From Marsupella aquatica (lineage: Eukaryota; Plantae; Marchantiophyta): a stretch of DNA of 64,000 bases. Made by a program: the position numbers and the translations under genes. This document shows positions 4,951 through 64,000 of this stretch, one piece after another. Location: the NCBI GenBank assembly GCA_973895155.1, contig OZ316898.1, forward strand, positions 11,121,187 to 11,185,186, read 5' to 3'. The notes below the pieces were generated by a model. That model searched no databases and had not been told where the DNA came from. It was given only the letters and a program-made list of their open reading frames with translations. The first letter of the stretch is position 1. The number at the start of each line of letters is the position of its first letter.

Positions 4951-5037
4951 ACCTCACCTAAAAGTCTAAGACACTTCTGGCGAAGATTCTTCGTGCGTTT
5001 GTCTGCGATTCCCACCTCGCGACAGACCCCATTAGCA

Positions 5038-5345
5038 CCTTAGATTTAAAGCTTTCTATATCTAGCAATACTAATAACACATCCGACAGCCTGGCTTTTG
5101 TGTTATGAAATGGTCATAACTCATGCCCCCATGATTCAGACATACAGCAAAAACAAATAGAAAACGTCTGAAGTGGTTTAAAGTTTAAACCACAATTGCA
5201 CCCTTAGATTTAAGGCTTCCTAGATCTAAAAATACTAATAACGCATCCGACAGCCTGGCTTTGGTGTTATGAAATGTTCATAACACATGCCTCCTCGATT
5301 AAGATATACAGCAAAAACAAAGAGAAAACGTCCAAATGGTTTAAG
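5038..5345. repeat. Imperfect tandem duplication, ~165-bp unit
   Basis: CCTTAGATTTAA.GCTT.CTA.ATCTA..AATACTAATAAC.CATCCGACAGCCTGGCTTT.GTGTTATGAAATG...AGAAAACGTC...TGGTTTAA at ~5038-5181 and ~5203-5345. Confidence 0.85.
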
Positions 5346-13389: not shown

Positions 13390-13519
13390 CGCAACGACAG
13401 CAGTGGCAACGAAACGATAACACAGTCGCAACCCGTGCTCTGCTCTGCTCTTCTCTGATCTTCTTGGCCGAATGCAAGCTTCGTCCTTCGGCTGATCCTG
13501 TTGCTACAATTGTAGTGTG
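12563..13519 (-). repeat. Dispersed duplication, copy A (5' flank/UTR + exon 1 + most of intron 1 of the PPR-CBS gene), homologous to 62033-62936
   Basis: Collinear shared blocks, e.g. CAGCTCCTA.ATAGTTG, AGAGCCCAGGAACTCCG, GACTAAAGCAACC, GCACTCACTTCTTGG, AAAAAACACTCGGAAA, TACAGACAGGT-like ATTGCAGACAGGT, ACAGTCCTCGAAT.TCTCA.AGAGC and TCGGCTGAT....TTGCTAC. Exon peptides [25 protein letters not shown] vs [25 protein letters not shown]. Confidence 0.92.
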
Positions 13520-15039
13520 TAAGCTGAACCTCAGCCCCAGCAGGCACATTTCGCCATTTCCTCCCGTGCAGCTGAGCTCTCTTCCTCCGGCTACCGAGGT
13601 GGGTGTTTCTCTGCTGCTGCGATTAGTGTACCATAGATCAATGTTTTCTCGTAGCAATGGGTGAATGTTGTTTCTCGTGCTCTGATTAGTGTACCATGGA
13701 TAAAGGGTGCTACACTTGTGACGAGATGTAGGGGACTCTAGATATCTGATGTTCAGATGAACCTATTGACTGGGGTTGGGAGTGTCAAACCCCCTTCCCA
13801 GATTTTGCTCCATGTAACCCAATCTTATTAGTACTTTGCCATAGAAACCTCCCTCTATGGCCTAGGTCTGAAGTGAAACCTCTAGATCAGAACTCATAAC
13901 TCTGCCCGCATCACTTAAAGCCCGGGGTGCAGGGAATGGGGACAAATCATAAACTAGTGTGAATAATAAAGAATCTTTTTTCTTGCAAGTGTTTTTTTAC
14001 TCATGTCTATTTGTGTTCAAAAGAACTGATAATCAGGCTAGTTATTTAGAAAACCTGATTTGACACTCTTTGGTGTGCAGTCTGAAGTACATCCAGATCC
14101 CTCTCATGGACTAGTGCCATAAGGTGAGTTCAGGTAACTTGAAACTTGAAGTATTCATAAGCAATGGCCTTCATTGCAACAGCTGTTGGCATCGGACAGC
14201 CACCTCTTCCCCAATGGACGCATTAACCACCCTCGGCACATGCAACAGAGAGGTGGGTCAACTGCTCGCCCCTCTGTCACAGCCCTTAAGCCCTCCTCCC
14301 CTCCGCCCTGCACTTCGAAGGGGATACAACAACGATCAAAGGCAGAGCCCTGCATCTCCAGGAGAGGGGTATTGTAATCTATACTATCAACTTCAATCCT
14401 TCTAGAGATCATTTTGAAGAATGGGTAGACGATGTGATTGTGCTGAATATGAACATTAGCGTACCAAGCCAAAGTAATTGTTGCTTTAGCTTTTTGCTAG
14501 TTATTTCCACCCATAAAGAGCAAAATCATATATTAGCTGGGGTTCCTTTTCACATGGGGAACAAGCCAGTTATAACCATGCCATGGGCAGCCAATTTTGA
14601 CGCTTAGACCATGAGAAGATCACAAGCCCCAATGTGGATAGATCTACCAATGGTGCACCTGTTTATGGAGATCTATGCTATTGGACTGTTAGCCTCTGTA
14701 GGCAAAGTAGTATATGCAGCCACCACCAATTCTCGTAGTAGATTTTCTCACATTCGAGGTTGTGTGCTTGTCGACTTGAATCAAGACTTGTTGAATATAT
14801 ACAGAATATTTAGCTTACCAAACATAAAAGATTTCAAGATAGCATATGAGTACAGGTCAATGCTAGATGCCTGCTTTGTTTGGAGGAAGAGGGGGCACGA
14901 GGCACAATACTGCCCCACCAGAAAGAAGGTTACTACAATAGAGTTTGAGTACTCAGAAGCAGGAATTACACTACCTCTAGACCAAGCCATCATGATAACA
15001 AGCACAGATGGAATCAAACCTGATGACCAAAGCCAAGGG

Positions 15040-15269
15040 GACATGAGGGAAGCCAGAGTTGAAGGGACACAAACACTACACATTGCAACCATACATACCC
15101 ATTTCAGGCTCTAATGTTTGCGGAAGACCATCTAGAGGATTCTCCTACTCAATTGACATGAGGGAAGCCAGAGTTGAAGGGACACAAACACTACACATTG
15201 CAACCATACATACCCATTTCAGGCTCTAATGGTTGCTGAAGACCATCTAGAGGATTCTCCTACTCAATT
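15040..15269. repeat. Near-perfect tandem duplication, 115-bp unit
   Basis: GACATGAGGGAAGCCAGAGTTGAAGG...GGATTCTCCTACTCAATT at 15040-15154 and 15155-15269. Confidence 0.95.
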
Positions 15270-15509
15270 ATTGACAGCAACAAAATCACACTCTAGAGGC
15301 CTGACACCCACATAAGCACATACACCCACCAAAACCTAGCACCATGCAGACTCTACCAGCACATAGGTTATTGTAGTACTCACGCCAATCAAGCAAAACA
15401 AGCCAGCCACTAACAAACAACTGATAACAACACAATCTAAAACAACAATGAAAACAAATTCCTATTAAAAACATCCAAACAGCCCTATGGTCTTTGAAAA
15501 ACAGAAAAG

Positions 15510-15865
15510 CATGAGAGTTGTGTTTGAAAATGGAATTTTTTAAGTCTCCATTTTTTCTTCAATCACATCATTTTAACACATTGCCCGGGCCTTGTGTTTG
15601 AATACTGGCATTGTGTTTGAGTTGGACACTATGTTTAAGATTTTACCCTAACCTGTTCTACATTGAGCACAAATAGTAAAACATTCAAGAATCATATGAC
15701 AATACCAATATTCAAACACAACGTCAATATTCAAACATACGCCCTACAAATATAAAAAATTAAAACACATAGTCAAAACTCAAATGCAACGCCCCGGGCG
15801 CAGTATTTCAATAGAGCGCCCCATGACCCACTATTCAAATACAAGGCCACGGCGTTGTGTTTGGG
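15510..15865. mobile_element. Foldback/MITE-like insertion within the LINE
   Basis: TTGTGTTTGA motifs (~15518, 15591, 15611) face inverted TTCAAACA(C/T)A motifs (~15711, 15730). GCCCGGGC...TTTGAGTT..ACTATG has an inverted counterpart at ~15768-15800. No TSD resolved. Confidence 0.4.
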
Positions 15866-38239: not shown

Positions 38240-38341
38240 TGTTATGGAATGAATGCAACTATATAGTCATGAATGTGTGTACATATAGTGGGGTCGGGTG
38301 ACCGACTGGTCCGATCTTCCGGTCATAGGTAGAATCTAACA
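38240..38341 (-). repeat. 3' LTR of the copia element (102 bp)
   Basis: TGTTATGGAATGAATGC...GGTAGAATCTAACA, adjacent to the PPT. Confidence 0.92.
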
Positions 38342-38637: not shown

Positions 38638-41600
38638 TCAATCGTCATGTGGAGTAGCAGCCTCCACGTTCATCATGCGTCGCACGCTCCGCAGTCCAAT
38701 CGCCTGGCAGTGTCGGTGGTGAACTGATGGCGATAGTGATTTGGTGAAGAGATCCGCACAGTTGTCTGCACTTGAGATCTGCAAAATGTTGATCTCTTTT
38801 CCGTGTAACTCGTGGGTGTAGAAAAACTTTGGAGCTATATGCTTCACGCGATCGCCTTTGATGAATCCTTTCGTGATCTGCTGGATACATGCTGCGTTAT
38901 CCTCAAAAATGTTAGTAGGCTTCGTTAGTGGTGGTAGGCCGCATTTGGTGTTGATGTGGTTTATAAAGGATCGTAACCAAACGGCTTCACGACTAGCCTC
39001 ATGTAGAGCTAAGATTTCTGAGTGATTCGATGAGGTTGCTGTTAGGGTCTGTTTCACGCTTTTCCAAGAAAAGGCGGTACCCCCTATAGTAAAAACATAT
39101 CCGGTTTGGGATTTTGCGGTGTCAGTGTCGGAAAGATATCCGGCATCCGCATATCCTATGAGTTCATGGTTTGCACCAAATGGGTAAAATAACCCGGTAT
39201 CGGTGGTGCCACGCAGGTACCTAAATACGTGCTTAACTCCGTTCCAGTGTCTGGCTGTGGGAGTTGCACTGTGTCTAGCTAGGAGGTTAACTGCAAATGC
39301 AATGTCTGGTCGGGTCTGATTTGCTAAATACATTAATGCTCCTATCGCAGAAAGATATGGGGTTTCTGGTCCTAATAGTGGTTCATGTTCTTCGCGCTTG
39401 CAAAAAACATCGGTATTGATTTCTAATGAACGTACAACCATTGGTGATGTCAATGGGTGTGCTAGGTTCATATTGAACTATTTTAGGATCTTTTCAGTTT
39501 GTGTTGTCTGATGGAGCATCATGCCAGTGGGTAAGATCTCTAGTTGTAAGCCTAGGCAAAAGTTTGTATGTCCAAGGTCTTTCATCTCAAATGTTGATTT
39601 AAGACTAGTAATAGTATCTTCTGTAATTTGGGGTGTCCCAAATATATTTAAGTCATCAACATAAATAGAAACAATGACATATTCGTCATCCACATGTTTA
39701 ATAAATAAACATGGTGTAATGGCATCATGGGAAAAACCCATGGCAATCATTTCATCAGTAAATCTTTGATACCATACTCTGCCACTTTGTTTCAGGCCAT
39801 ATAATGCCTTCAACACGCGGATAGCTAGTCCACGGCGAGTATTCCGTACGGTTGACACAGCGGTGTCGTTATTATGAATTACATGTGTAGATGACACATG
39901 AGGTGTAACTTGAGATAATTGTGTTATAATCTTATGTAAATATGGGATATGCAATTTAGCGCCTTGAGCTAAAGCTTGGCGACGTTGCTCCAACTCGGGA
40001 GGTGATCGCATGTATAGACAAGTGTCTAAAGTTCCATATAGATATGCGGTTGCAACATCCAGTTGTCGCATTTGTAGTTTATGGAAAATGGCAAATCCGA
40101 TAAGGTATCGGAATGTTGTGCTATCCATGACCGGTGAGTAATTTTCATTGTAATGAATTCCCAGTTGTTGGGTAAATCATTTCCCTACCAGACGTGCTTT
40201 GTAGCGTACAACTTGGCCTTTATCATTTCATTTTCGGACAAATGTCCACTTGGAGCCAATGAGATGTACGTCTTGGGGTGTTGGCTCAACTAGGCCAAAA
40301 GTGTGTCTGCTTAGTAGGGAATCTAATTCTCCATTTATAGCTTTTTGCCATTCAGGCCAATCTGGTCTGTTTTGGCATTCTAAGATGGATATTGATTTGG
40401 GTGTTTCGTCTGTGATATGTGTTGCCACCATTAATGCAAAAGCATCATCTATTGAAGTAGTATTTCTATCCCACGTCTCGCCGGTGTGTGCGTAGTGGAT
40501 AGAAATCTCCTCATGAGTTGTGGATTCGTTATGATCGACATTAGGTGAAGGTGGTATAGATGAACCACGCCTTCTTGGTTGTTTATCCTTTGATCCCAAA
40601 GGTCTGCCATGTTTGGCACGAGGTTGGGATGTACTTGCTGACTCACTTGATAATTCGATGCGAGCAGATGCTCTCGCAACTGGAATATGTGAGCGGCTAA
40701 CTTGTAATGTATCGACGAAGACATCGGGAAGTTCTTCCACAATCTTGTGGAGTTGTAAAATTCGTTGGACTTCTTTCTCCCCTTGATTGGTTTGAAGGTC
40801 TTGCCAAAATGGCAAGTGTCTTTCCCACTCCAAAGGTGGTTGTGGGTGTTTAGGTGTTATTAATGATGGATAAACGTATTCATCAAAATGATAATCTAGG
40901 AATCTAGATTTAAAGACGTCGCCAGTTGTAGGCTCCATATATCGGATTATGGACGATGAGTCGAATCCGATGTATATCCCTAACTGTCATTGGGATCTCA
41001 TCTTGGTTCGTTTGGGTGGAGTAATGGGGACCATTACTTGACATCCAAATGAACGAAGATGTGATAGGTCAGGTTTTATACCATTAGCAATTTGGTATGG
41101 GCTATAGGTATTAAAAGCCGATGGGCGGTATTGAATTAATGCATTAGCCTGTAATATGGCATGTCCCCATGCTGAGACGGGGAGTTTCGACTACATTAGT
41201 AGTGGGCGTGCAATGAGCTGAAGGCGTTTAATGACAGCTTCAGCTAATCCATTCTGGAAATGCACGTGGGGTACAGGATATTGTACGTCGATGCCAAGTG
41301 ATGTACAAAAGTCGTCAAATGTTTCAGATGTGAATTCCCCTGCGTTGTCCACCCTTAGTGTCTTAATGGGGTGATCTGGGAATTGTGCCTTCACGCGCAG
41401 GATTTGCGCCAAGATGTGAGGCATCACCGTGTTCCTCGTTGAAAGCAGGGTCACATTTGACCATTTAGTGGATGTGTCGATTAATACTATAAAGTAGCGG
41501 AAAGGTCCGCTTGGAGGGTTAATTGGCCCGCAAACATCTGCATGGATGATTTCCAAGAATTGGGGTATTTTAGTTGGCAATTTTGATGTCGTGGGCCTTG

Positions 41601-44729: not shown

Positions 44730-44842
44730 TGTCATGGAATGAATGCAATAGATAACTGTATAGTCAGGAATGTGTGTACATATAGTGGGGTACGTCGGGT
44801 GACCGGCTGGTCCGGTCGTCCGGTCATAGGTAGAGTCTAACA
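44730..44842 (-). repeat. 5' LTR of the copia element (113 bp)
   Basis: TGTCATGGAATGAATGC...GGTAGAGTCTAACA; differs from the 3' LTR by two small indels and several substitutions. Confidence 0.92.
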
Positions 44843-44902: not shown

Positions 44903-45492
44903 TTACTTATAAATCTGCAACTACAAGCTAGAGTTGGGGCCTAGGCTTCTAGAGTGAAGCCTCTAGACCGTAACTCCATGACTCATCATGTAGAATGATG
45001 AGAAAACTGATGTCTATGATGTATGTCATGTCAAATGATAATCATGAGTGCTTTTTGTTATGATTTCTATTTATATTAAAAATTGATCTCTATGGCCCCA
45101 CCATATTATATGTGCATAAGTGTGATGTAGGATAGAAAAACTAGAGATGTGCATAGAAAAAAGTACTATGGTATGTTATGTCTGATTATTAAAATGATGA
45201 CATGCATGATAATTTTTTTATCATTTCATTAACCTTCAAAATATGTGAATAAGAAATATATTTTGGTGACATTTTTATTGTCCTCCCCGCTATTCACGTT
45301 CAAAGAATGGGTAGTCGGGGCTAGTTAATCTAAATGATGACGAGAATTATCATAAATGGTCATCATTTTGACATACACGCCCCTTCCTTCTTTATATACA
45401 CAGAAACTTTGGTGGGGCTTTAGAATCATGGTCTAGAGGCTTCACTCAAGCCTAGACCTCAACTCTAGCTTCTCATTGCAATTGACTAGTAA
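44903..45492. mobile_element. MITE-like non-autonomous DNA element with ~65-bp TIRs
   Basis: Left AAGCTAGAGTTGGGGCCTAGGCTTCTAGAGTGAAGCCTCTAGACC is the inverted counterpart of right GGTCTAGAGGCTTCACTCAAGCCTAGACCTCAACTCTAGCTT. AT-rich non-coding interior. Confidence 0.8.
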
Positions 45493-48272
45493 TATTTGTC
45501 ATGTTTTTGAACTCAAGTTAGCTCAGAACAATGCAATAGTGGTTGAACTTATGGGTGAAGCGCCCCCTTGAGCTACCCTATGTCCTAACTTGCCCACCCC
45601 TGCTGCCTTGAACATGGAGATGGGTCTCTTGTTGCTGCAAATTAAAGACAACCAGGAGTGGGACTGGATGATTGAAATAGACTCACCCCAAGGTGGAGGA
45701 TGGTAGCCAATGGACCAATCAGGTTGAGGGGAGTTTCAACTGTCCAATTTAGGAAAAATGCAGATGACTATTGGCAGATCATTCAAAGCTAACCTGAGTT
45801 AGTTTGTCTAGCCCCTATTGGAAACGGATGCCAGTGTACTAATTAAACTACACATCTTGGCAAAATCTGTGCCTGGACAAAGAAAAATGGCAACCTGGTA
45901 CATAGCTACCCAAGATTTGCATTGGCCACTAGTTGCAGCTACACTCTGTTTTGGGGTGAGAGAAAAGAAAGATTACAAATCCTTGTGCATTAGGGTCTGC
46001 CTGCATGCAGCTTGACCTCACCATCCCTGATCCGTCCTTGTGCATCCTTGCCCCCCTTGTGTGTCATGGAGGGCATGGGCCACAGATAGGCTCTGGGTGC
46101 ATTCACAACCTAATTTGCCATATTCAAGGGGAAGTCTTGGAGACTTCCTCTCTGGTATGGTCAGTGCTAGCCATATACAAGGGGGAAGTGTCCAAGACTT
46201 TTTCCTTTTTCGCTTTCCTCTCATTTTTCCTCACCTGTTCCATAATGCTCCACAAATTACGGAAATATACTATTATGGTGTAACCAGGTTTTTGTCATGG
46301 CTAGTGGTGGTTTAAACCATGCATGCCAATACAAGGAGCGTCAGAGGACTCCGGGTTACGCGGAGCCCTCGTTTATTCTTCGCATTTTTCAAGGGACATC
46401 GGGATCGCTGCTGTGCCTGCTCTTTCACCGTTGGATTTCCACTCGTACCATCACAAATTCTTGACCATTTGATGCAATCTTGGTCGCGAATTGTAGATCT
46501 TGACGACATCTACGTCTCGGAAAAATTGCCACCACATTTGACTCATTATTTCAAGAGAAATACATAAAAAAACATTCCTGCAATTTCATTGGCTGGGATA
46601 AAAAATTTGAAATTTAAAACATACTCGGGCAGCCGGGCAGGCCTTATTCAGGGTACGGAGCAGGAGTTTATGGTCACGACCCATGTACTGCAAATTTATC
46701 TTTTGTACTTTTTTTCCTGTGTTTTACAAATTCAAATGGTAGCTCATGTAGTTCCCTTTGGGTGAGGCTTGGCATCTGGTCTTGTAATTGACACCCCACG
46801 ATGTCAGGGTCAGAGCCACCAGAAATTCCTACTAGTCGATGTAAGTGAATACCCCGGGGTGGTGGTCCGTCTAGGCCTAAGTACCCAAGTGATGACATTG
46901 ACTACAAGAGGGTTCGGAGACCAGATGCCAAGCCTCCTATCCATGTCCCACTTGAGCGGTGGGATGATTGGGAGGAGCTCAGGGGATTATTGGGGGACCA
47001 TGCAACCACTCATGCTACAGTCATTATTTGGCTGCTCGACCAGGCTCAAGATATGATCGATGTCTTACGTACACAGCGAGCATTGGAGGCGGCGAGGCTT
47101 CTGCAAGCGACAATGGCTGCTGGGTATGAGAGTGGAGGTGCAAAATTTGATGTCAATGCACATCGGGCCAGCAATATGGAAGATGACATGGTATGAATCA
47201 ACCTAGCCCTACTGTAGGACACCCAATCATTTTGTGGTGTGTATTCCAAATATGATGCAAAATTATGCCTTGCATTATAATATCTTGGTCAAAGAGTGCA
47301 GGGTACTGACCATCACAATACTAATGGTACACTACTTTCTTTGTTGACAAATATTCGTGCAGCAGGGTAACGTTAGCGGTAGTGTTGAAGATAGGCTGTC
47401 TCAACAAGAAGTGGGGCCATTGGATGAACAGGTGTGTATGAGGTTGGTCTATTGTCAAATCAGAACTTTAGATCGTTTGACTAAGGCTCTATCAAATATT
47501 TTATCAAATATAATTTTATAAACATCCGTTAGTAAGTCTAAGGATGGTCAGAAATGGATATTTTACTCAACAAATCTATTGTGTACACATTTCCTTTCCA
47601 ATAAATAAAAACTCTTGAGCACACATTTCACTGACCTAGACATTCAAGTTTATATTAGGAACTTTGAATAATATTCAACTCTATCATAGTACACACCAAT
47701 TTATATGAGAAAATGTTTTTTTACCTGGAAATTCTAAATCACTCGAATTAATATATCAGTACAAATCCTTTCACTAGTAATATCACTTGCCCATTGTGAC
47801 GTACCATGCCTCCATTGAGACTATTTGTTCTTCATCCTAAACTTTGTGTCCCATTCACTCTAATGTAATGTTGCAGAAAAAAATATTTAATATTTTCACT
47901 CTAATGATATGAATATTCATCTATTTTTTATGAAGATCCTAAATTTTGTATCCCATAATATGAAGGATTTTGAGCACAATGAGGAAGTGTTTGGGACTTA
48001 CGATGAATGACCAGAGGACCTGCTACATGGATCGTTCGGAGAATATCACGCCAACTTTGAAGAGGATGAGCCAGATGTTGTGGCTGCTCTAGGTGTAGAG
48101 GTGTGTAATGTAATTTACTCTTACAACTGACCCAACTACTTCTTGTTCAAAGTTTTAGCAAGTTTTGTTGCATACTTTTTGAATGGGCATAAACTTTAAC
48201 TCATACTTCTGAACGCATGAATTGTTTTTCTTGGACATATGTAATGGACTGAGGAGATTTGCAAGACTGTAC

Positions 48273-48460
48273 ATGATGAATTCCCAGGCTCCTCCTACTG
48301 AGCTGCCGGATTCTCAGGTTCCTCCTCTTGAGGCGATGGATTCCCAAATTCCTCTTCATGACATTGATCCCGAGCTTTCTCCAGTTGAGGTGATGGATTC
48401 CAAAATTCCTCCAATTCAAGTGTTGGATTCTCAGGTTCCTCCTGTTGAGGTGTTAGATTC
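48273..48460 (+). repeat. ~30-bp (10-aa) coding minisatellite in the transposase N-terminal region
   Basis: GATTCTCAGGTTCCTCCT.TTGAGG.G.TG units giving (DSQVPPVEVL)-like repeats, about six copies. Confidence 0.85.
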
Positions 48461-50726
48461 TTTGGCTCATCCAAGGGTGCCTACATCAAGATTCAGATCT
48501 CATGAGCCTGCTAGAGTAGGGTTTCTAGAGCGACACTTGGTGCACACTTTGGTGGACCAGCTACTCCCTAGATGTCACATATCCGGATGTCCTTTGACCC
48601 CTCGCGTAGAACATGTTAGAGAGTTGCAACAGTTGTGGTCTATTCGAATCACTTGTGGGTAGGAAGGACATGGTTGGACTTTTCTCACAGGTGAGATGGA
48701 GCCAGGGAGGGGTACACCTATGGTTACTAGCAAGTTGTACCACTCCACATTATGCGCAGGCCTGACATATACATCACTTGCAGCCGTTGCATCACATGTA
48801 GGACTGCATGTCCCTAGCTCGCAACATTGGTACATGACTTTCAGATTGGTCAGGGTCGTTCTGGCATTGGTTGGATTAGAGTTGTCAAGCAACAATGGGA
48901 GGAAAACCAACAAAAGTTGTGGGAGGATGTCAAACATGATCTTCACCACATGCGTGACAACGAAAGAGGTTAGTACCCTCTATCTATGATTTTATAAAAT
49001 TATTTTTTCAAGTAAAGCTGAGACAAGTCATTGTTCTGGTCCTAAAGCTGTCCTTGAATTTTTTATTTTATTGTACATTTTTATATGATTTTAAGTCACC
49101 CAGTATCATTAGCATGCATGTTGTGCTTTTCGGCAGATCCGGGTCTTGTGGTGTATCTAGATGCTCGATGGGACTCCTCTCGTAGTGGTTATCATGGCAC
49201 TGTTTCTATTATCAACCTTCATGATAGTAAGGTCATAGAAATGGTTACTACCACAAAGAAAGAGCAGCCCAATTCATGGTTGATGGAGGAAATAGGGACC
49301 AGAAAAGGATTGGAGAGGTTGCGAGATAATGGAATTGTCATCAAAGAGGTTAGTGCATCAATTTTTCAATATTATGAATTTCTTCATAGCTTTCTTATCA
49401 TGTGTTTGTAAATTCAGTATTAAATGCTAATTATCTTGGGACTTGTCATGTGTAGGTCATCCATGATGAAAATACCGCGGTGGATGCTATCCTTAGAGAC
49501 CTAGGGTTGAAAAATCAAAAAGATTTGTGGCACAAAGCTAAAAATCTTGTCAGAAAATTTGTGGACAAGTTAGTGAAGTGCACATTCACCTTGACTGTGG
49601 ACATTGATACTGCAACAACAAGGTTAGTAAATATTGTGTTATGCAAGTTTTTTTTACTTTACTACAAAATTACATTAATTTTATCTTCCAAATGTCTTCC
49701 CTCCATTCTAAGAGGTCACTGCGGGGGTCATTGTGCAGGTCACAGCTGCAGATTGCAAGTGTGAAGCAGTTGCAAGATTGGCTGAAGGCAAAGAGGGTAA
49801 AGGGGTTGTCTAAGTTGAGGAAAATTGACCTCATCCACAAGGTGGGAGGATGGAGGGGATTACCAATTGAGGAGACATTGGTGCCTATAGTATCCCGTGG
49901 ACTGAAGTATCCAGAGCTTAGTCAACATAACATGTCCATGAAGTTGAAGACTTGGTTCTATATTTGCTGCAGAAGGTGCAAAACATCGTAAGTATTATAC
50001 TAGCTCCATCCAAACACAATTTTGACCTTCAGGGATGATTTGTAATTCTTTGAGACTTTGGTTGGTGGACTTGGATGATGAATTCTTGTTACGCAGAGGG
50101 GGCCATGCGCATTCACTAGCACATGAGGTAGGTAACTGTGCAGACCATTGTTATTCATACAACATGTCTTACACTACCTGACCGACCCTGACACCATGTT
50201 GGAGAGGAAGGAGGACCCCAGCTGGATTTATATTATGCAAAAGATTAGTATATGCATTTCAGAACAAGTTTGTGTGTGCAACTGGAACTGTCATCAAATC
50301 ATTAATGCATTATTTTAGACATAATGCACAACATTACTTATTGTGGTTGTTTGTTGTCATTGTTGGGGCATAGACTCAGTGACCCATGTTGCCATGAAGG
50401 GATTTATGGCAAAGTACATCACTCCAACAAAGATGCAATGGTATACAATGGCCAGAGAAAATTTATTGTCAGAGACATTCCATTCAGTGATGGGAAAGTT
50501 TGCCACGAAACGCATACACTTTCCAGTATCTCATGAGGCTCGTCTCATGTGTGCGTTCATGGATTGGAATGAGAACATTGGCCGCCCGGTGTGGAAGATA
50601 GTTCCTCGCATTCCCGTGCATACTGCTGTGAGAGATAGGCCAGCTCGCACTAGACTGTTGGTGGAGAGGACCACAAATTGGAAAGATGCAATTAGTCAAC
50701 GCATCTATGGAGCTCCAACATTGTGA
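48273..50726 (+). pseudogene. Kolobok-type DDE transposase, intron-containing, disrupted
   Basis: Spliced reading C..GHGWTF...KLYHSTLCAGLTY...W...Q..|LVVYLDARWDSSRSGYHGTVSII...SWLMEEIG..KGLERL..NGIVIKE|VIHDE...QKDLWHKAKN...|RENLLSETFHSVMGKFATKRIHF...ARLMCAFMDWNENIGR. This matches the DGRxDS / MExxG / TD / DxWH / ExFHS...KR...AR...DxNEN pattern. In-frame TAG at 48660-48662 and a frameshift near 48835. Further 5' exons possible from ~46740. Confidence 0.72.
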
Positions 50727-51082
50727 TGCATGTCATTGTGAGTCTAGTGCCTGGTCTGGTGTGTATTATTTTCTTGTAAGTTATGTTGTGGCATTTAATT
50801 TTTCTTCAATATATAATTTGTGTTAAATCAATTATCAACTTTGTGAAGAATATTTCCTTTTATTTTAGATTCTAATATTTGGTCATTTGTTGCAGGGCAC
50901 CCAGTTTTAGGGAGGTTTAGGCATAGATTTGGTGACATGGTTTACAAACTTGTGTTTCTATTCAAAAGGGTATATGTACATGGTGAACCCTTGTAGCTGC
51001 CAATCAGCAAGAGTTTCATGACAATTGAAGAATTTTTATTCATATGGGTGGGTCACGTATACCATTACATGAAAAAGCATGA

Positions 51083-51619
51083 CTAGAAATTATACATGGG
51101 AATGACTCCTAGGAAATTCTCTTCATCCGACTGCCAATGCGATTTTATTGCCAATTCCACCTGCTCAGGGAGCACTGAGCTCTCCACCTTTCCACACAAC
51201 GAATTCAGGTGTCTGACAACTTGCAATCTCTTCTTATACATAACGTTCTCACACCAACTAAAAGCAGCACATAGGAGGAGCTGGTGTGTGGGTACTGTAG
51301 GAGAGAGAACCTCACTACAATCGTGCACAAATGTGCAAAACTCAGGGAAACAGTACTCAATGTCAGCCATAGTGAAGGTGCATTGTCGGTTGATGCTATG
51401 TGGTTCTATCCAAGTCAGGATAAAGCTCCCATCTCGACACTCATTCAAGGTAATTTTCTGTTTACAAGTTTCCTCTTGGTCTACAAACTAAAGACAACAC
51501 AAATGAATGTCAAAACTTAGCTAATATTTTTGTAAAAGTAGTACTGTAAATAGAAACCAAAAATTAACCAGGAAACTATACTTACATGATGTGGTCCATA
51601 TCTGGTGTGAGCCTTCCAT
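51083..51619 (-). CDS. Kolobok accessory protein (KolX/P2X7-C-terminal-like), paralogue 1; 2 exons
   Basis: Exons 51586-51619 and 51083-51480 (phase 1, GT-AG): MEGSHQIWTTSYQEETCKQKITLNECRDGSFILTW...FPEF...LLLCAAFSWCENVMYKKRLQVVRHLNSLCGKVESSVLPEQVELAIKSHWQSDEENFLG. Confidence 0.6.
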
Positions 51620-51867
51620 CACGACAGCCTTTGAGCTTAGATAGGAGGTTCTGTTGCATGCCAAGACAAAGATTGTGGAGGGCAATGCATGATCATTATT
51701 ACCTCATCAAAATGATTGACAGTGTTACAGAAAAAGCGATTGATGTGGAGTCAAAATGATGGTAAACTCAGAGGTCATCTCCACACATTGTTGCAAAAAT
51801 TTTCATTACATAAAACTAGGTGGAAACTTGTCCACCATTACATGAAAATACTATAAAATGTGGATAT

Positions 51868-52251
51868 CTACTCTGGACAAAATCCTACAAATTGCTCGCC
51901 TTCAGAATGCCACTCGTACTGGATGGCTTCCTCGACAGGGTGAGCTATTTTGGTTCTTTCAGCATATCCACATGCCAATGCCAAATGTTTATAAACCATG
52001 TAACGTTTGCATTTCATGACATCTTCTGTGTAGCTATAAGCTGCACACATCAACAGGTCTGCCAAAGGGACTGCAGGGTTCAAAGCCTCATGACACTCTG
52101 TGACAGCCTTCCAGTACTCAGGGAACTCCCACTCTATCTCCAGAGTACTAATCAGGAGTGTTTCCTGAGCCACACTAGGGGGATCATTTGATTTCCACCA
52201 GGTCAAACAATAAAGCCCAAGGTCAACTTCACGTAGAGTGAGGGTGGCCAT
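51868..52251 (-). CDS. Kolobok accessory protein (KolX/P2X7-C-terminal-like), paralogue 2
   Basis: MATLTLREVDLGLYCLTW...FPEYW...LLMCAAYSYTEDVMKCKRYMVYKHLALACGYAERTKIAHPVEEAIQYEWHSEGEQFVGF. The C-terminus fits the RY.AYR...G...R..LP..V...IR..FP.....YxGF motif. Alignable end-to-end with paralogue 1. Confidence 0.65.
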   Translation of the reverse strand: MATLTLREVDLGLYCLTWWKSNDPPSVAQETLLISTLEIEWEFPEYWKAVTECHEALNPAVPLADLLMCAAYSYTEDVMKCKRYMVYKHLALACGYAERTKIAHPVEEAIQYEWHSEGEQFVGFCPE

Positions 52252-52257
52252 GGTCTT

Positions 52258-52336
52258 GTTGTTATGCATGATTCTGCAAGAGACAATCATGATGATGTTG
52301 TTATGCATGATTCTGCAAGAGACAATCATGATGATG
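52258..52336. repeat. 39-bp tandem duplication
   Basis: TGTTGTTATGCATGATTCTGCAAGAGACAATCATGATGA twice. Confidence 0.9.
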
Positions 52337-52599
52337 TTTGGATTAATTTTGTGACAAATCCATATAATATTTCTACTCAATTTAGAGTAATTTAATCTGA
52401 GATCTTGTTTTACTCAACTATGACCAAGAGTCTTTAGTTGCTACAAAGCTATCCTTGTGAGTGCATAAGCCTCTCAAAATAGTGTATATTGTAGTGTAAA
52501 TAATTCACTCTGAGAAAGGCTGTCTTTAGTGGCTAGAAAGCTATGATTCCTTGAGAATGCATAATCCTCTGAAAATAGTATAAACTATAGTTACAATGA

Positions 52600-52815
52600 C
52601 GCTGCACACAGATTTTTGGGAATCAACACTTTTGTTTGTTACTTTTTGGAAATCTACTTGTTTTCTATGTAGATGTGACACTGCGCACAGATTTGTGGGA
52701 ATGTGCACTTTTTGTTTGTTGCTTTTTTGAAATCTACCAAGTGATGACATCTAGATGTGAAACTGTGCACAGATTTTTGGGAATCTGCACTTGATTGTTG
52801 CTATTTTGGAATCGT
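52600..52815. repeat. Three ~80-bp subterminal tandem repeats inside the Kolobok-like element
   Basis: CTG..CACAGATTT.TGGGAAT...CACTT..TTGTT.CT.TTTTG.AATC three times. Confidence 0.8.
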
Positions 52816-54449
52816 AGACTCAACCCAATAAATGAACCCAAAAAAGCAGCATGAAACTAAATCGAAACAAGAAACATCAAAACAAAAACAGGTGGAAATA
52901 TTTTGAATGAGCTTCGAACACCAAACCTTGGTCTCAATGTTAGCAGGCGGCCACCTTTGGAGAGTGCACTAAATCTCTTCCCGTCTTCACTGAAATGCGA
53001 GTAGCAGGAAGCAAAGTTGCAAATAGTCACAGCCAATAAGGATCAAATGAGCAAAGACAACGCTCACAGTGCACACGTACGAAATGAAGCTGCCAGACTT
53101 TATACACAGTCTCAACGACGAGCGATGACTGTGAGGTAGTTTCATTTGTTTCGTGAAGGTCGAGGCCAAAAGGAGATGGAGGACAAGGGCTTTGAAGGGA
53201 CCGCCATGGAGGACGAAGGGACGAAGGGACCACACGGCAGGAGGTGGTTCAGCTTTCATTTTCTTGCAAAATTTGAAATTCCTTCGTTTCTTCACAAAGG
53301 GATTGACGTTTGGAGAGGAGGACGTCGAACGTAGGAGCGAGGACTGGGTGCAGGACAAACGCTGCGGGGGTTCTCTTGCGTGACACAGGACAAGTGGGCC
53401 CAGGCAGCCACGAACGGTGGGGCCCGGGCAGTGGAGTACAAACTGAACGTACTCAGGTTGCACGGCTCAGCCCTCTTATACCTGTAGTTGTGGTTTAAGG
53501 GCAGGGGCAAGCCAGGTGGGGATGGGTGCAGGGTCCAGGTGTGTGTCAGTCAAGTTGGTCAGGGGCACATCTGGGCCAGCTAGTAGGTAGTTTCTGAGAA
53601 TCCAGCAGTCATAGAAAGCAGGTCAGGCCATGAGGATTCATTCCTGTCCAGTTTGTTTTGAGAAACTGACCCCAGAGTTGCAAGATCTGACTAAAAGCTT
53701 GATCTGACTAAATGTTTGCTTTTTCCACCATGTTTGATAAACAAGTAAACTAACATGTTAAATGGAGAAGTAACGATCCAATCACGGTTCTTCTATGAGA
53801 TGTCCGGGCATTGAGCTATGAAGGTTCCTTAGTCCAAAAGCAAAGGATATGGCAGACACATTCTCTTAGGATTTCAAGGAATACAACATTGAGCAAACAC
53901 AACAAGATTGCGTATTGATCTTTGTGTTTGTCTCATTTTGCAACTCTGGCCCCCAACAAATTCAAATATCAGGAACGGGATTAACTTTGTAGTAATGCCC
54001 TGTTTCCAAGGCATTGTAGGCTGTAATGCCCCCTGCTATAATGCCCCCCAAAACTAGGGTCATAGCCCAAGTTTTGAGGGACTATTATTGACCACAATGC
54101 CCTGATAGCAAGAATTTAATATACTTAAACTCCCGGAAGATTCTTCACTCATATTCTCTTTCTCCTTTAGTTACACTTTTAACAATCCCAAATTTCACGC
54201 AAGTTGAGATTTCAATTTATATTCCAAGAGCCAGCAGAGTACAATCTCAATATGCCCTTGCAGAGCCTGATATGGGCATTCTCTTCCACGAAGTACAAAA
54301 AAAATTTAAAGAGAAAAATGTTGAAATGATTTAGCGTTGCTAAGCACCTACTGTGTAGGTTGTGATTTAACTCAAAAACTAGAAATCAATGCATTCTGTA
54401 ACACGTCGCAATATCCAGTGTTACACTTCTAGGGTACAGGGTTTAAGCA

Positions 54450-56504
54450 ATGGCGAGCGAGAGCTCTTCGTCCAGCGATGAAGACGAGGAGCACAATGCT
54501 GCGTTACGCAGTGTCGCCATCGATTCCAATGCTGTTCTTCAATTCGCGATGCCCTCAGTTCAAGGTTCTGGCCGCAAATCTCGCCTATCGAAATTCTCCA
54601 GTAAGAGATCTGCAAAAGTCCTTGAGGACGACTATGACACTGACGGAGATCGTACCGGTGGGCTGAAGTTGTATCAAACTAGGGTATTTGATTCATTTCC
54701 TTTCCTCCCTCCACCCCTCTCTGTCTCAAAGAGAGTTTGATAATTGAATCTAACTTTTCAAAACTTTCACGGATCAGCCGATAGAGTTTCGGTTGAAGCA
54801 CATTGCTTCTTCTTCCTTTTCTCATGTCTAAAGTCTTATCCAGTGGTGCCAGTTGGTTCTCCCTGGATGCCTCAACTTAACCTTAACATTCGTTTCTGTA
54901 TCTCTCTCGTTGAATTCTATTCTATGCCGCAGTGTGATTCGCCCCCACCGACCATAGCCCCTTCTTCGGTCTCTAGGTCTTAGATTTGAATCTCAGAGAG
55001 ATGAAATGTGAAAGTGTTTTCCAGGATAATTGTGCTTTCTCTGTCAATAATCTCAACTGCTTTAAACGTTAGGTAGGCTGAGGGAACACGGAAAACGCGA
55101 TTGCATCGAAATTTACTGCAGCTCATTGACGCATTTCTAAGTTCTTGGTTGAAAATGTAGACCCACTTCTAGACTTAAGGCCTGATTTTCAAAATCTTTT
55201 AGAGTAATTTAAAGAAAATTTGTTAGTCGCTGATTTGAACGACTTCAGCTAAATTATTATTGTTTGGAAGATGAACTGATAAGAAGTGTATTTGTTCTTG
55301 CACAGAATTTTGTGCGTTTGACCTCGGCATGTTTGCGTTGACCTGGATGAAATTTTATAGACTCGTGTTTTCTGGTCTGGATGCTGCTTGAGTGGCATGG
55401 TTCTGATATTTAATGATATCGATATCCTTTTAAGGCAAGTCTGTTATACTCCAAGTGTTGGGTCTCGTGGGCAGTAGACAGGATTACTCAATCATCAAGG
55501 TATTGTAGTGAATCCGTGGACTTTATCCATTGTGGCAGATTGCTTTGTCTGCAGGTTCAAGACCTTCTCCAGAACCACCTCGACAAAGTTTTTGAGGAAA
55601 GTGTAGGGGAGGTAGCAGTTGAACCTGAGAATGGTGCGAAGTCTGGTGGTCACGGAGCAGACGACGAAACTTATGATGACGAAATTCGTCTATATGGCGA
55701 TGCGCCTCTTGGTGTTTCCTTGAAGAGGTCCAGGCCATCGAAGCGTAAGTCGTTTGGGTCCATTTTCCCTTACCAAAGAGACTGCATTTGTGATGTCATA
55801 CATAGTGAAATCCTTCTTACGGACGTGTTTGCGTCCAAGTTTTGTACTGTGCATTCTTGAAGTATGAGAACGAATGTACAGTACTACGTAACTGACCACT
55901 CACTGGTAAAATCCAGATTTTCAAGTGAGACTACTGCCTCCGCGATATGACAGTAGTGATGACGATTCAGCTGAGGTATTTCACACAAGATCTCTCAAAG
56001 CATCGTTTCTGCCTAGGTCTAGTATGTAACATGTCTCAGTTCAGTTCATGATCTTAACATGGCCAGTGAAGTTTGAAAGTGCCTTCAGAGACATCAAACG
56101 TCACAGAAATCGTGTTAGGATAGTGTGACTAATATAGAATCAAATTGGAGTAAGCAAACTTTCTTTCTAAAGCTTTCTGAATCGGAGACTGATCGTTCAG
56201 CTGATGTGCTTTACAGCGGGAGTCTCGTTTCCAGGTGGCAGCTATTGAGACTTCGGAGGTCATATCTCAGGCAGAGAAAGCCCGGGCAAAAGCTTTTGCC
56301 AGATTTCTGGAAGCAGAAGAGGCCTCCCGAAAAGCAGACAAAGCTGAAGCAGAGCGAGTAAAACATTTGAGGAAAGAGCGAGGGGAGGAGTGGCTTCCTT
56401 CAATTGCTAAGGAAGCCATGATTGAAGTTAGAAATGAAACACAGAGAAGAAAAGCAATGACCTCAGAAGGGAAGATTGGAGTAGTTGCCACCTACAGGAT
56501 TTGA
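54450..56504 (+). CDS. CUSTOS (C12orf43)-like uncharacterised protein, copy 1; 4 exons
   Basis: Exons 54450-54683, 55555-55744, 55917-55975, 56217-56504, phase-consistent GT-AG. SSSSSDEDE...LRSVAID, YQTRVQDLLQNHLD, EIRLY, DSSDDDSAE.RESRFQVAAIETSEVI, RGEEWLPSIAKE. Motif order resembles animal CUSTOS; that family call is tentative, the gene itself is well supported. Confidence 0.75.
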
Positions 56505-60906: not shown

Positions 60907-62802
60907 CTAAAAGTCTAGGCCACCTTCTCTAGCTGCATCTGCGAGAGCTTGAATCCGTCCATGGTAAACGAAGCCCCCTCTATCAAAGGCCACCTTTGTA
61001 ATTCCTTTCTCCAAACAGACCTTGGCGATCTCTTCACCAACTCTCTTGGCAGACTCCTGCAATTCAAAATACTAAGTCTCAAAACAATGTCCAAAAGACT
61101 CACCCCTTATTCAATGCCTAAGTCTCTTACATTGATGCAAATTTCTCTAGGTTGGCACTGTAAAGCTAAAATGGGGCACCCACTCATTTGGACACCGATC
61201 AGTCAACCACTCGCAACGAAACTTACAATGGTGGGTCCGGCAGACATCTCGAGCTCTTCGCGCAGAGCTTTCTTCAGTGTCGATGATGCGGCCAAAGTGT
61301 GTTGCTTGGTGTCATCAATCACTTGAGCATATAAATGCTTGTTGGAGCGGAAGACTGCAAGGCGAGGCCTCTCTGTAGTGCCATTGAGCTGTACAGACAT
61401 GGAACACATAAGCACCGAACAAGCTGAGACGATATAAATGTAATAATCATCTACGGAAGAAATGCCGCAATACACACCTCTGCCCACCTCCCAGAAATTG
61501 ACTTTGGAAGGGCGCATCCTACCGATCGTAAAATTGAACAACTGACTTTGACAGAACAGAGAGGGCTCCAAATAATTGCTCCAGAAGCCCAACCAAGGTT
61601 TGCAGATTCTATGAATACCTTCTTGCGGACGCGGCGATGCCGGACCTTAACAGTTTCCCTTCTGGTAGGCTCTCTGGCCTCTATCCTTACGGGTGCGTAA
61701 GCAACTGCAATTGCGCAACGGGAAACAATAAAATTTTCATCCATAACTAGAAGTTTAACTTTGCACATCTCAACAATTCACGGAAAAATCCAATTCAAAG
61801 GTCCGCAACGCAGCAAATGCCATGCCCAGACTTAGAAACATTAGGGCACACATTCAAATGGGAACAACCAGATTTTTTGACAGCAGAATAATCTCCTCAG
61901 CACAAAAGGATGTACTTTTTATCGGGAGGAGAAGGCGGGGATCAGTAGAGAGACGAACCACGAGAAGTACAGACCAGCACAATTCCCGAGCTAGTAACTA
62001 CATACCATATGTGCTAACTACTACAACAAAAAATAGCAAAGTAGACCAACTTCTCAGATAGTCAATCAATGCTGACGAAATCAATGACAAAAGAACGAAA
62101 AAGGACCCTCAGCTCCTACATAGTTGTAATGACATACTCCAGAAGTAGAGCCCAGGAACTCCGACCAACAGGAAATCTATCGACCCATACGCCACAATGC
62201 GACTAAAGCAACCCACACCACATTATGGGCACTCACTTCTTGGTACGGAAACCAAGGAGGAAAACTAACATGCTATGCACCCTTGAATTTTCCATCGTCA
62301 ACTCTCAAGTGAAGTGAAGCAGATCTCATTCTCCGAGGACACCTCCACCACACTCTCGAGAGAAATAGACAGGACCTGAGTTCTACCTCTGAAGCTTCCA
62401 GGGTGTCATAGTTCTATATCAAGGACAATGTTCAGTCGTAAAAAAACACTCGGAAAACCAATATCTATGATACACTACGCACGGCCCGACACAGATTGCA
62501 GACAGGTGGCAAGAACCCTATACTCCAACAGATGACACCGCCAACATTCTAGATCTAGCATTATTGTCACTAACACCACAGAAAAGCTTCTCGAGAATGA
62601 CCAGTTCTACTACAATAGATATAAACACCGGAAACCGACCTGAATTGGTCAAAATGGGGGAACGGCACGGGACAGTCCTCGAATTTCTCATAGAGCAGTC
62701 GCTATGGCCTCCAATCGAGATCCGCACCTGGGTTGCAGCCGTCTGCCGAACAGCAACGGAGCCGAGAGCAGCACCAATGATGGTAGCTGAAACCGCAGCC
62801 AT
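60907..62802 (-). CDS. RPL18: Plastid 50S ribosomal protein L18 (uL18c) precursor; 5 exons
   Basis: Exons 62728-62802, 61916-61997 (tentative phase 0-to-1 bridge), 61619-61704, 61227-61388, 60907-61056. [45 protein letters not shown]...[47 protein letters not shown]. Confidence 0.93.
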
Positions 62803-62936
62803 CTCCGACAACAACAACGACGACAACAGCTCCAACGAAATGCGAACAGAGCCGAAACCCCTAGAATGCTCTCCTCTGCTTGGTGGAATGCAAAGCCTCG
62901 TCGCTCGGCTGATTCCCTTGCTACCACTCTAGTGTC
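62033..62936 (-). repeat. Dispersed duplication, copy B (5' flank/UTR + exon 1 + intron 1 of RPL18), homologous to 12563-13519
   Basis: Same collinear blocks as copy A. Confidence 0.92.
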
Positions 62937-63276
62937 CGCCAAGCACGTTCGATTCTGCCGTTTTCATCTCGAGCAGATAAGGTATCTTCGTTCACCTACG
63001 AGGTCATTGCGATTACTCTTGTACCTATGCCATGGATGAACGGTGAGAGGGCACTCTTCCTAAGTGCATAATACGTAAGGGCATAACCTGCCTTACTGCA
63101 AGCAGAGTAATTATTAATTTCAACGTGTTTTCGTTTTAGCCAAAGTGGTGAGTGTCACCTGGTGTGAAGGAGAAAATGCTCGGAATATACTTTATCTACT
63201 TTTCCTACATTGATTTCTGACCCTTAGATCCAGTGTACACTTCTACAGTAGTCTTCTAGGGTACAGGGTTTAAGCG

Positions 63277-63510
63277 ATGGCGAGCGAGAGCTCTTCGTCC
63301 AGCGATGAAGACGAGGAACACAATGCTGCGTTACGCAGTGTCGCCATCGATTCCAATGCTGTTCTTCAATTCGCGATGCCCTCAGTTCAAGGTTCTGGCC
63401 GCAAATCTCGCCTATCGAAATTCTCCAGTAAGAGAACTACAAAAGTCCTTGAAGACGACGATGACACTGACGGAGATGGTACCGGTGGGCTGAAGTTGTA
63501 TCAAACTAGG
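63277..63510 (+). CDS. CUSTOS-like gene copy 2, exon 1 (gene continues beyond the window); head-to-head with RPL18
   Basis: MASESSSSSDEDEEHNAALRSVAID...GLKLYQTR|GT, near-identical to 54450-54683. Intron identity continues to the window end (63228-64000 vs 54413-55234). Confidence 0.88.
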
Positions 63511-64000
63511 GTACTTTATTCCTTTCCTTTCCTCCCTCCACCGCTCTCTGTCTGAAAGAGAGTTTGATAATTGAATCTAAACTTTCAAGGAGCAGCCGAT
63601 AGAGTTTCGGTTTAAGCACACGACTTCTTCTTCCTTTCTCATGTCTAAAGTCTTATCCAGTGGTGCCAGTCTCTCGTTGAATTATATTCTATGCCACAGT
63701 GTGTTTCGCACCCACCGACCATAGCCCCTTCTTCTGTCTCTAGGTCTTAGATTTGAACCTCAAATAGATGAAATGTGAAAGTGTTTTCCAGGATAATTGT
63801 GCGTTCTCTGTCAATAATCTCAACTGCTTTAAACGTTAGGTAGGCTGAGGGAGCACGGAAACGCAATTGCATCGAAATTTACTGCAGCTCATTGACGCAT
63901 TTCTAAGTTATTGGTTGAAAATGTGGACCCACTTCTGGACGTAGGGCCTGATTTTCAAAATCTTTTAGAGTAATTTAAAGAAAATTTGTTAGTCGCTGAT

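Follow-up and report, generated by a model that had tools for sequence, protein, structure and literature searches.

A decayed, probably Kolobok-type DNA transposon in the liverwort Marsupella aquatica

Kolobok transposons are known from animals, fungi and protists. In the plant kingdom they have been listed only from a chlorophyte and from rhodophytes (PMC9587614), and the published Kolobok alignment adds one Klebsormidium entry (Data S5, PMC9587614). A locus in the liverwort Marsupella aquatica raises the question of whether land plants carry such elements as well. The window, the whole stretch of DNA that was analysed, has 64,000 nucleotides (GCA_973895155.1, contig OZ316898.1, positions 11,121,187 to 11,185,186 of the forward strand), and positions below are counted from its first base. 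An earlier note on this DNA proposed a Kolobok-like transposon at 46316-53494. The segment is probably an old, inactivated cut-and-paste DNA transposon of the Kolobok superfamily, from a lineage seen so far only in streptophytes (liverworts, Chara and Closterium). The assignment to Kolobok is largely supported by TTAA flanks and short inverted repeats in three Riccia relatives, by a DxxH motif, an H..H..C..C cluster and collinear catalytic blocks in the transposase, and by a link to the Pfam model PF20700. The land-plant part of the proposal also stands, because the closest named relatives are liverwort proteins. The left limit of the element is uncertain by about 35 bp or more.

The family appears to be under-described in land plants, as the earlier note had suggested. 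In the literature that was searched, no published Kolobok description from a liverwort, from Marchantia or from land plants was found, and the only mention was a passing RepeatModeler-type count in spinach. Kolobok is usually omitted from the classification of plant transposons. A liverwort family with inverted repeats, TTAA flanks, a spliced transposase and a small accessory gene extends the host range of the superfamily, and it gives annotators a model for sequences now called "SAP domain-containing protein" or left unnamed. The new elements of this analysis are the family termini defined in Riccia, the connection of PF20700 with Kolobok, the SAP insertion, the linkage of the accessory gene from Chara to liverworts, and a first, weak structural test of the idea that the accessory protein is KolX, the second protein of Kolobok elements.

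The transposase gene and its decay

A multi-exon gene on the plus strand spans 46.8-50.7 kb of the window. The exons and their predicted functional parts are the following.

46849-47190, plus strand: exon 1, N-terminal helical region, with a donor GT at 47191; tblastn matches to P0015 (residues 3-67) and P0003 (residues 4-66)
48222-48968, plus strand: exon 2 (start approximate), in which a linker rich in proline and made of 30-nt tandem repeats precedes a beta region rich in Cys and His
49137-49348, plus strand: exon 3, with the predicted first catalytic Asp (DARWDS, 49160-49177) and the ME block (MEEIG, 49283-49297)
49456-49622, plus strand: exon 4, with the predicted second catalytic Asp (IHDEN, 49459-49473) and the DxxH motif (DLWH, 49522-49533)
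49739-49987, plus strand: exon 5, in the insertion domain, with a helix-extension-helix segment that resembles SAP (49761-49844)
50033-50127, plus strand: decayed remnant of the exon expected to carry H-x2-G-x-H-x2-C, degenerate and out of frame with its neighbours over 50033-50330; weak hidden Markov model (HMM) match, E 0.06
50324-50726, plus strand: last exon (start approximate), with C-x8-C..WG, the predicted catalytic Glu (SETFHS, 50469-50486), DWNEN (50562-50576) and the stop codon; E 4e-47 to 1e-25 against relatives

All of the motifs quoted in the earlier note for a spliced plus-strand protein were found in these exons, between 49.1 and 50.7 kb. They sit in separate reading frames and are joined by canonical GT-AG introns with fitting phases, for example 48969-49136, 49349-49455 (phase 0) and 49623-49738. 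When full-length relatives are aligned to the window, they match seven collinear blocks from 46867 to 50714. These blocks, together with the E value of the last exon alone, show that the gene is not a chance arrangement. The window exons were searched one by one. The Asp, Asp and Glu blocks (49160, 49459-49473 and 50469-50486) are conserved in the relatives, which also have a DxWH motif where they align to DLWH. Exon 5 aligns to the SAP-positive region of the relatives; in the window itself this exon has no Pfam SAP match. Pfam gave nothing useful for the window exons or for the two small open reading frames (ORFs) downstream, and tRNA and Rfam scans of the window found no match.

The named relatives come from liverworts and streptophyte algae. 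A phmmer search with the last exon against 1.84 billion representative proteins matched 75 representatives. Thirty of these were looked up, and they belong to Riccia sorocarpa, R. fluitans, Calypogeia fissa, Chara braunii and several Closterium strains, or are environmental or transcriptome sequences. No moss, hornwort or vascular plant was among the 30. A word-index profile search with the transposase alignment found Riccia proteins only.

In the window, the transposase gene has become a pseudogene. Exon 1 has a reading frame that begins immediately after a stop codon, and there is no Met codon (ATG) at the start position of the relatives. A conserved block of exon 2 is interrupted by an in-frame TAG (48660-48662), and the homology of this exon changes frame near 48835, where there is no space for an intron. 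The H-x2-G-x-H-x2-C exon is degenerate as well as out of frame. The claim of an intron-containing transposase holds for the exons and introns, but the copy lacks a start codon and carries an in-frame stop and a frameshift.

Members of the family differ in intron content. At least five introns are present in the window copy, while the core of a Riccia sorocarpa copy (locus L003, 10692-11885) is intronless. Two of the window introns (49349-49455 and 49623-49738) fall in the core where another Riccia locus (L001, 11136-11786) has one continuous exon. This difference points to gain or loss of introns inside a transposon gene, and the family is a small natural case of that process.

The linker of exon 2 has a repetitive composition. 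From 48274 to 48490, 30-nt tandem repeats encode the proline-rich motif (V/I)PP..(V/A)(M/L)DS(Q/K). In the model of the Riccia relative P0030, residues 73-111 and 128-160, upstream of the Cys/His-rich region, have a predicted local distance difference test score (pLDDT) below 50. Because these segments are poorly predicted, the linker is probably disordered.

Termini and TTAA flanks

The ends of the family are defined in Riccia. The loci examined were L001-L004 of R. sorocarpa, L005 of Calypogeia, L006 of Closterium and L007 of Chara. L002 and L003 share about 8.7 kb that is bounded exactly by TTAA followed by ACCACC(A/G)CTA on the left and by TAGTGGTGGT followed by TTAA on the right. L004 is a 5.45-kb element that begins with ACCCCCAGTA after TTAA and ends with TACTGGGGGT before TTAA. 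The consensus of these three loci is ACC(A/C)CC..TA ... TA..GG(T/G)GGT between TTAA flanks, and none of them has a direct repeat beyond the TTAA. The inverted repeats of the family are short (10-14 bp), and all of the 3' ends, including that of Calypogeia (L002-L005), have a subterminal CT(T/C)TTATA motif that directly precedes the inverted repeat. The flanks of other copies had been set beforehand as a test that could refute the Kolobok reading; at L002, L003 and L004 they are TTAA and not another duplication. No convincing TTAA-flanked pair of inverted repeats was found at the Chara, Closterium or Calypogeia locus or at Riccia L001.

The 5' ends of two Riccia copies have additional terminus-like sequences. 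In L002 (6880-6925) and L003 (7318-7363), the terminal repeat is followed by a 9-nt spacer and then by a perfect palindrome, AGCGGTGGGT A ACCCACCGCT, with two terminus-like arms. The arms are probably extra binding sites for the transposase.

The corresponding features of the window are the following.

46300-46311, minus strand: exact family terminus ACCACCACTAGC, pointing leftwards, with 0 mismatches to the Riccia terminus pattern; it abuts the TTAA at 46312-46315
46312-46315, no strand: candidate left target-site duplication TTAA, the same as the TTAA at 53495-53498
46316-46332, plus strand: tentative candidate for the 5' terminus; just ACCA, and 10 of the first 17 bases, agree with the Riccia 5' ends
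52588-52807, no strand: a 59-nt repeat, present three times, in the 3' non-coding part
53472-53494, plus strand: 3' terminus, with a subterminal CT(C/T)TTATAC motif and the inverted repeat TAGTTGTGGT; 88% match over 25 nt to the 3' end of Riccia L002
53495-53498, no strand: right target-site duplication TTAA, directly after TAGTTGTGGT

The right end of the element is at 53494, since a conserved subterminal motif and a family terminus occur together there, and since within the 64 kb no sequence but 53472-53494 matches the 3' consensus strongly, with 1 mismatch as opposed to 4-5 in the runners-up. Of the candidate ends in the earlier note, TTAA before ACCA on the left and TGGT before TTAA on the right, both sequences are present and the right one is the family terminus, but the left one is not established. 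No partner of the 3' inverted repeat was found in 30-46.9 kb of the window, a search for terminal inverted repeats within 44-56 kb found none, and comparing the DNA of the 5' regions between genera gave no information.

The leftward-pointing terminus at 46300-46311 bears on the position of the 5' end. It is one of two exact terminus 10-mers in the window, and no transposase homology lies to its left when the relatives are aligned. There is an even chance that it is the end of a second, non-autonomous or relic element that shares its TTAA with the transposon, in which case the 5' end is at 46316. Such sharing is a natural outcome because the family targets TTAA. Alternatively, a degenerate subterminal palindrome like those of L002 and L003 may be present, with this terminus as its left arm, and the true end would then be near 46283. 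A far left end at 34767 (TTAAACCACCTCAA) was rejected: its 2 mismatches correspond to the frequency expected by chance, and the element would then enclose exons of the host gene WDR91.

Other terminus-like sequences occur elsewhere in the window. Another 12-nt sequence identical to the Riccia L002 terminus, GTTAGTGGTGGT, is on the plus strand at 38924-38935 and is flanked by AGGC, not TTAA. About 0.1 exact terminus 10-mers are expected by chance in the window, and this one may be a relic end or a chance occurrence. At 4947-4971 and 5172-5198 there is a weak match to the family 3' terminus (4 mismatches, minus strand), and close by, within a region of tandem repeats (5026-5344), lie TTAAACCACAATTG and ...GTGGTTTAAAG. 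These are possibly relics of small Kolobok-type elements.

Probable assignment to the Kolobok superfamily

Profile searches connect the family to a single transposase model. In Pfam searches of the relatives, several proteins match SAP, and the only transposase model matched is PF20700, which is titled "Mutator-like transposase". Chara P0045 scores 30.0 bits with this model (gathering score 26.5). The clusters nearest to Riccia P0030 in the ESM Atlas are also PF20700 (features score 0.91, 26 of 30 hits; structure template modelling score 0.55-0.64). Domain partners in these clusters include an RNase_T exonuclease (Mollusca), a YqaJ/lambda-exonuclease (Arthropoda) and THAP (Cnidaria), and other clusters are from Parabasalia. 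RNase_T and YqaJ are the accessory domains that define KolobokD and KolobokE, and Trichomonas families are included in the published alignment of the Kolobok core (Kojima & Bao, PMC9587614). These associations suggest that PF20700 is in practice a model of Kolobok transposases. The earlier note had held that best profile hits to Mutator-like element (MULE) or hAT transposases would speak against Kolobok. The title of PF20700 formally produces such a hit, but the title misleads, given the KolobokD, KolobokE and THAP partners, and no hAT model was matched.

The order of the conserved blocks is that of Kolobok transposases. The blocks D(A/G)xWxS.R, ME, HDxN or DGD, D(V/L)WH.AK, H..H..C..C, and LE.FHS or NESxN are collinear with the published alignment (Data S5, PMC9587614). 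The closest patterns are those of the Kol0 lineage (Kolobok_1_XT, 1_NV and 14_CGi) and of the group of 16_CGi, 1_OwFu and 1_MyEd. The C/DxxH motif, located between the second Asp and the Glu, is common to hAT, P, MuDR, Dada and Kolobok, and of these five only Kolobok has been described with a TTAA duplication (PMC9587614). The AlphaFold2 model of P0030 has a pLDDT of 78.7, with most of the core above 90. Its best fold matches in the PDB are P element transposase (E 1.1e-5), ISCth4 and Hermes, as expected for the C/DxxH group, since there is no Kolobok chain among the matches.

Comparison with described elements places the family near Kol0 (Kolobok-1_XT and Kolobok-1_NV; Kapitonov & Jurka 2007; Kojima & Bao 2022, PMC9587614). 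Both have short inverted repeats and the TTAA target duplication. Their DDE transposases contain DxxH, an H..H..C..C cluster ahead of the catalytic Glu, and the blocks D.(Q/R)(F/W)DS, ME, D(V/L)WH.AK and LE.FHS. Both also have a convergent second small gene with a product that ends like KolX. Kol0 hosts are animals, whereas the hosts here are streptophyte algae and liverworts. The family also differs in the SAP motif inside its insertion domain, and no THAP domain was detected by Pfam. Members of the superfamily in the green lineage are Kolobok-1_KlNi from Klebsormidium nitens, a streptophyte alga, and Kolobok-1_MicRcc299 from Micromonas (Data S5, PMC9587614). Their blocks are of the DGxW..RG, GD(A/E)DS and NH types, in contrast to DARWDS, HDEN and DLWH.AK here, and no KolX has been reported for them.

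Intact relatives in Riccia suggest how the element would have moved. The spliced DDE transposase, with its RNase H-like core and DxxH motif, would recognise the terminal inverted repeats (ACCACCRCTA), which are 10-14 bp long, and further recognition sites are proposed in the terminus-like subterminal palindromes. An alpha-helical insertion domain within the core would carry the SAP DNA-binding motif and the H..H..C..C cluster. The transposase would excise the element, reinsert it at TTAA and duplicate the TTAA.

Several points weigh against the Kolobok reading. Kolobok termini are described as 5'-RR ... YY-3' (PMC9587614), but all of the defined ends of this family (L002-L005 and the window 3' end) are 5'-AC ... 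GT-3'. The AC ends that the earlier note had remarked on are thus a family trait and not a reading error. The left end in the window lacks a recognisable inverted repeat: it agrees with the 3' inverted repeat of the element at only 6 of 14 positions. TTAA is palindromic, and the duplication of the target is deduced from occupied sites and not proven. Two of the 28 family members match PF20700, which Pfam names Mutator-like. Finally, the blocks were compared with the published alignment by eye.

Other identities for the element are far less probable than Kolobok. A Mutator-like element of the MULE or Phantom type would agree with the title of PF20700 and with the presence of ISCth4, a bacterial transposase of the IS256/Mutator type, among the best fold matches. 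This identity is very improbable. MULE target duplications are 8-11 bp, whereas three relatives have 4-bp TTAA flanks, and the inverted repeats are just 10-14 bp. None of the 28 members matches the classical models MULE, Transposase_mut and DBD_Tnp_Mut, or those of hAT, P and piggyBac. The domains in the PF20700 clusters are those of KolobokD and KolobokE, and H..H..C..C and D(V/L)WH.AK match the Kolobok alignments. Membership in hAT was rejected: that superfamily has an 8-bp target duplication and a C-terminal dimerisation domain, whereas the flanks here are TTAA and no hAT domain was matched in the 28 members. The multi-exonic structure with canonical introns, an accessory ORF that is still intact, and the listing of relatives as ordinary genes in the Riccia annotation would fit a domesticated, transposase-derived host gene beside small genes. 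The defects of the window copy (the missing start codon, the in-frame stop and the frameshift) speak against this, as do the many Riccia copies dispersed on at least six chromosomes, which have inverted repeats, TTAA flanks and differing flanking genes, and a host gene is even less credible than a MULE. Another superfamily that targets TTAA, piggyBac or a Sola-like one, would explain the flanks, and KolX-like proteins are also found on a few piggyBac families. It is the least credible of these identities: no member matches the piggyBac transposase model, DxxH and the architecture of the insertion domain belong to the hAT/P/MuDR/Kolobok group, and the fold neighbours are of the P, hAT and IS256 types. 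The termini of piggyBac are typically CCC...GGG, whereas those of this family are ACC...GGT.

The accessory genes and other repeats of the window

Small minus-strand ORFs face the transposase gene, as the earlier note had reported. There are two, at 51086-51487 and 51871-52251, each given 3 nt longer in the entries below.

51083-51487, minus strand: accessory ORF copy A (KolX-like), without a start codon and probably dead
51868-52251, minus strand: accessory ORF copy B (KolX-like), intact with 127 codons from ATG to stop; AlphaFold2 pLDDT 86.8

The two copies are paralogues (39% identical), and the linkage to the transposase is found in relatives too. A convergent accessory ORF lies downstream of the transposase at all four Riccia loci (L001-L004), and the Chara locus has one on the minus strand at 13497-13742 (E 1.4e-6), so the linkage is old. 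At least 11 accessory homologues are annotated in R. sorocarpa, and a word-index profile search with the accessory alignment found Riccia proteins only. At Riccia L001 (CM100795.1), a minus-strand gene model of 314 amino acids (13950-15491) with a cytochrome P450 Pfam match overlaps the KolX-like ORF (15039-15554, minus strand). This is likely to be either a chimera of the annotation or a fragment captured from the host. The 3' terminus of L001 was not found.

The accessory protein is rather probably homologous to KolX. Its C-terminal half resembles the ends of KolX and of the P2X7 cytoplasmic ballast. In the last 55 or so residues, about ten ordered positions are common with the KolX/P2X7 alignment in Figure S6 of PMC9587614, and the shared motifs are YR, LG..R, (L/I)P....AI(K/R), aromatic-x2-P..E/G, and (F/Y)VG(F/Y) at the C-terminus. 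When the accessory model was compared with 48,161 chains, P2X7 ranked 9th with 14% identity, a weak match that is not significant alone. It aligns C-terminus to C-terminus over the end of the ballast, with the lowest root-mean-square deviation among the ten best rows. Methods based on sequence gave no connection: Pfam P2RX7_C did not match the accessory proteins, and the accessory family profile did not find P2X7 among PDB sequences. A Foldseek search with the accessory model gave no match, and an ESM Atlas search with Riccia P0082 gave no usable one. The earlier claim of a KolX protein related to the P2X7 tail thus holds for a small, convergent and linked gene, while the relationship itself draws on weak fold and motif evidence.

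The accessory protein differs from its proposed counterparts in its cysteines. Kol0 KolX has the cytoplasmic ballast fold, is clearly similar to P2X7 residues 476-595 and has seven conserved cysteines that bind two zinc ions, whereas the accessory family alignment has no conserved cysteine at the seven zinc-binding positions. Compared with the ballast of rat P2X7 (PDB 6u9v), the accessory protein lacks both these cysteines and the channel domain. KolX-like proteins encoded on some piggyBac elements are likewise cysteine-poor (piggyBac-2_GrCh and piggyBac-14_PI; Data S6, PMC9587614). Those elements also target TTAA, but the transposase here is not of the piggyBac type.

The small ORF could instead be an unrelated, lineage-specific gene of a Kolobok element, with a C-terminus that resembles KolX by chance or convergence. 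This is unlikely, although it deserves more weight than the other identities considered for the element. The failure of the sequence methods fits it. Against it, P2X7 was a candidate named a priori, and its identity is higher than that of almost all other rows; the ten or so conserved positions are collinear with KolX; the gene has the position and orientation of KolX in Kol0 elements, and the transposase resembles Kol0. The absence of cysteines has a precedent in the piggyBac proteins.

A working guess is that the accessory protein is inherited along with the element and acts as a cofactor or regulator of transposition. If it is indeed KolX, the origin of the P2X7 ballast module would move outside animals, where it can be tested. 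A broader scenario, tentative and somewhat short of an even chance, is that a Kol0-like lineage was carried from charophyte algae into liverworts and pairs a SAP-bearing transposase with a cysteine-free, ballast-like partner. In that case land plants would hold bona fide Kolobok elements, and the KolX/P2X7-ballast module would be a component of Kolobok that is ancient, older than animals and able to work without zinc sites.

Other repeats are present in the window. A 565-bp unit at 44916-45480 has 61-nt inverted arms (44916-44976 and 45423-45480) at 85-86% and looks like a miniature inverted-repeat transposable element of another family. A 100-nt repeat is common to 38240-38341 and 44730-44842. 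There are two dispersed duplications: 54426-55234 is 88% identical to 63253-64000, and 12564-13518 is 75% identical to 62034-62935, the latter being a shared PPR-CBS/RPL18 module.

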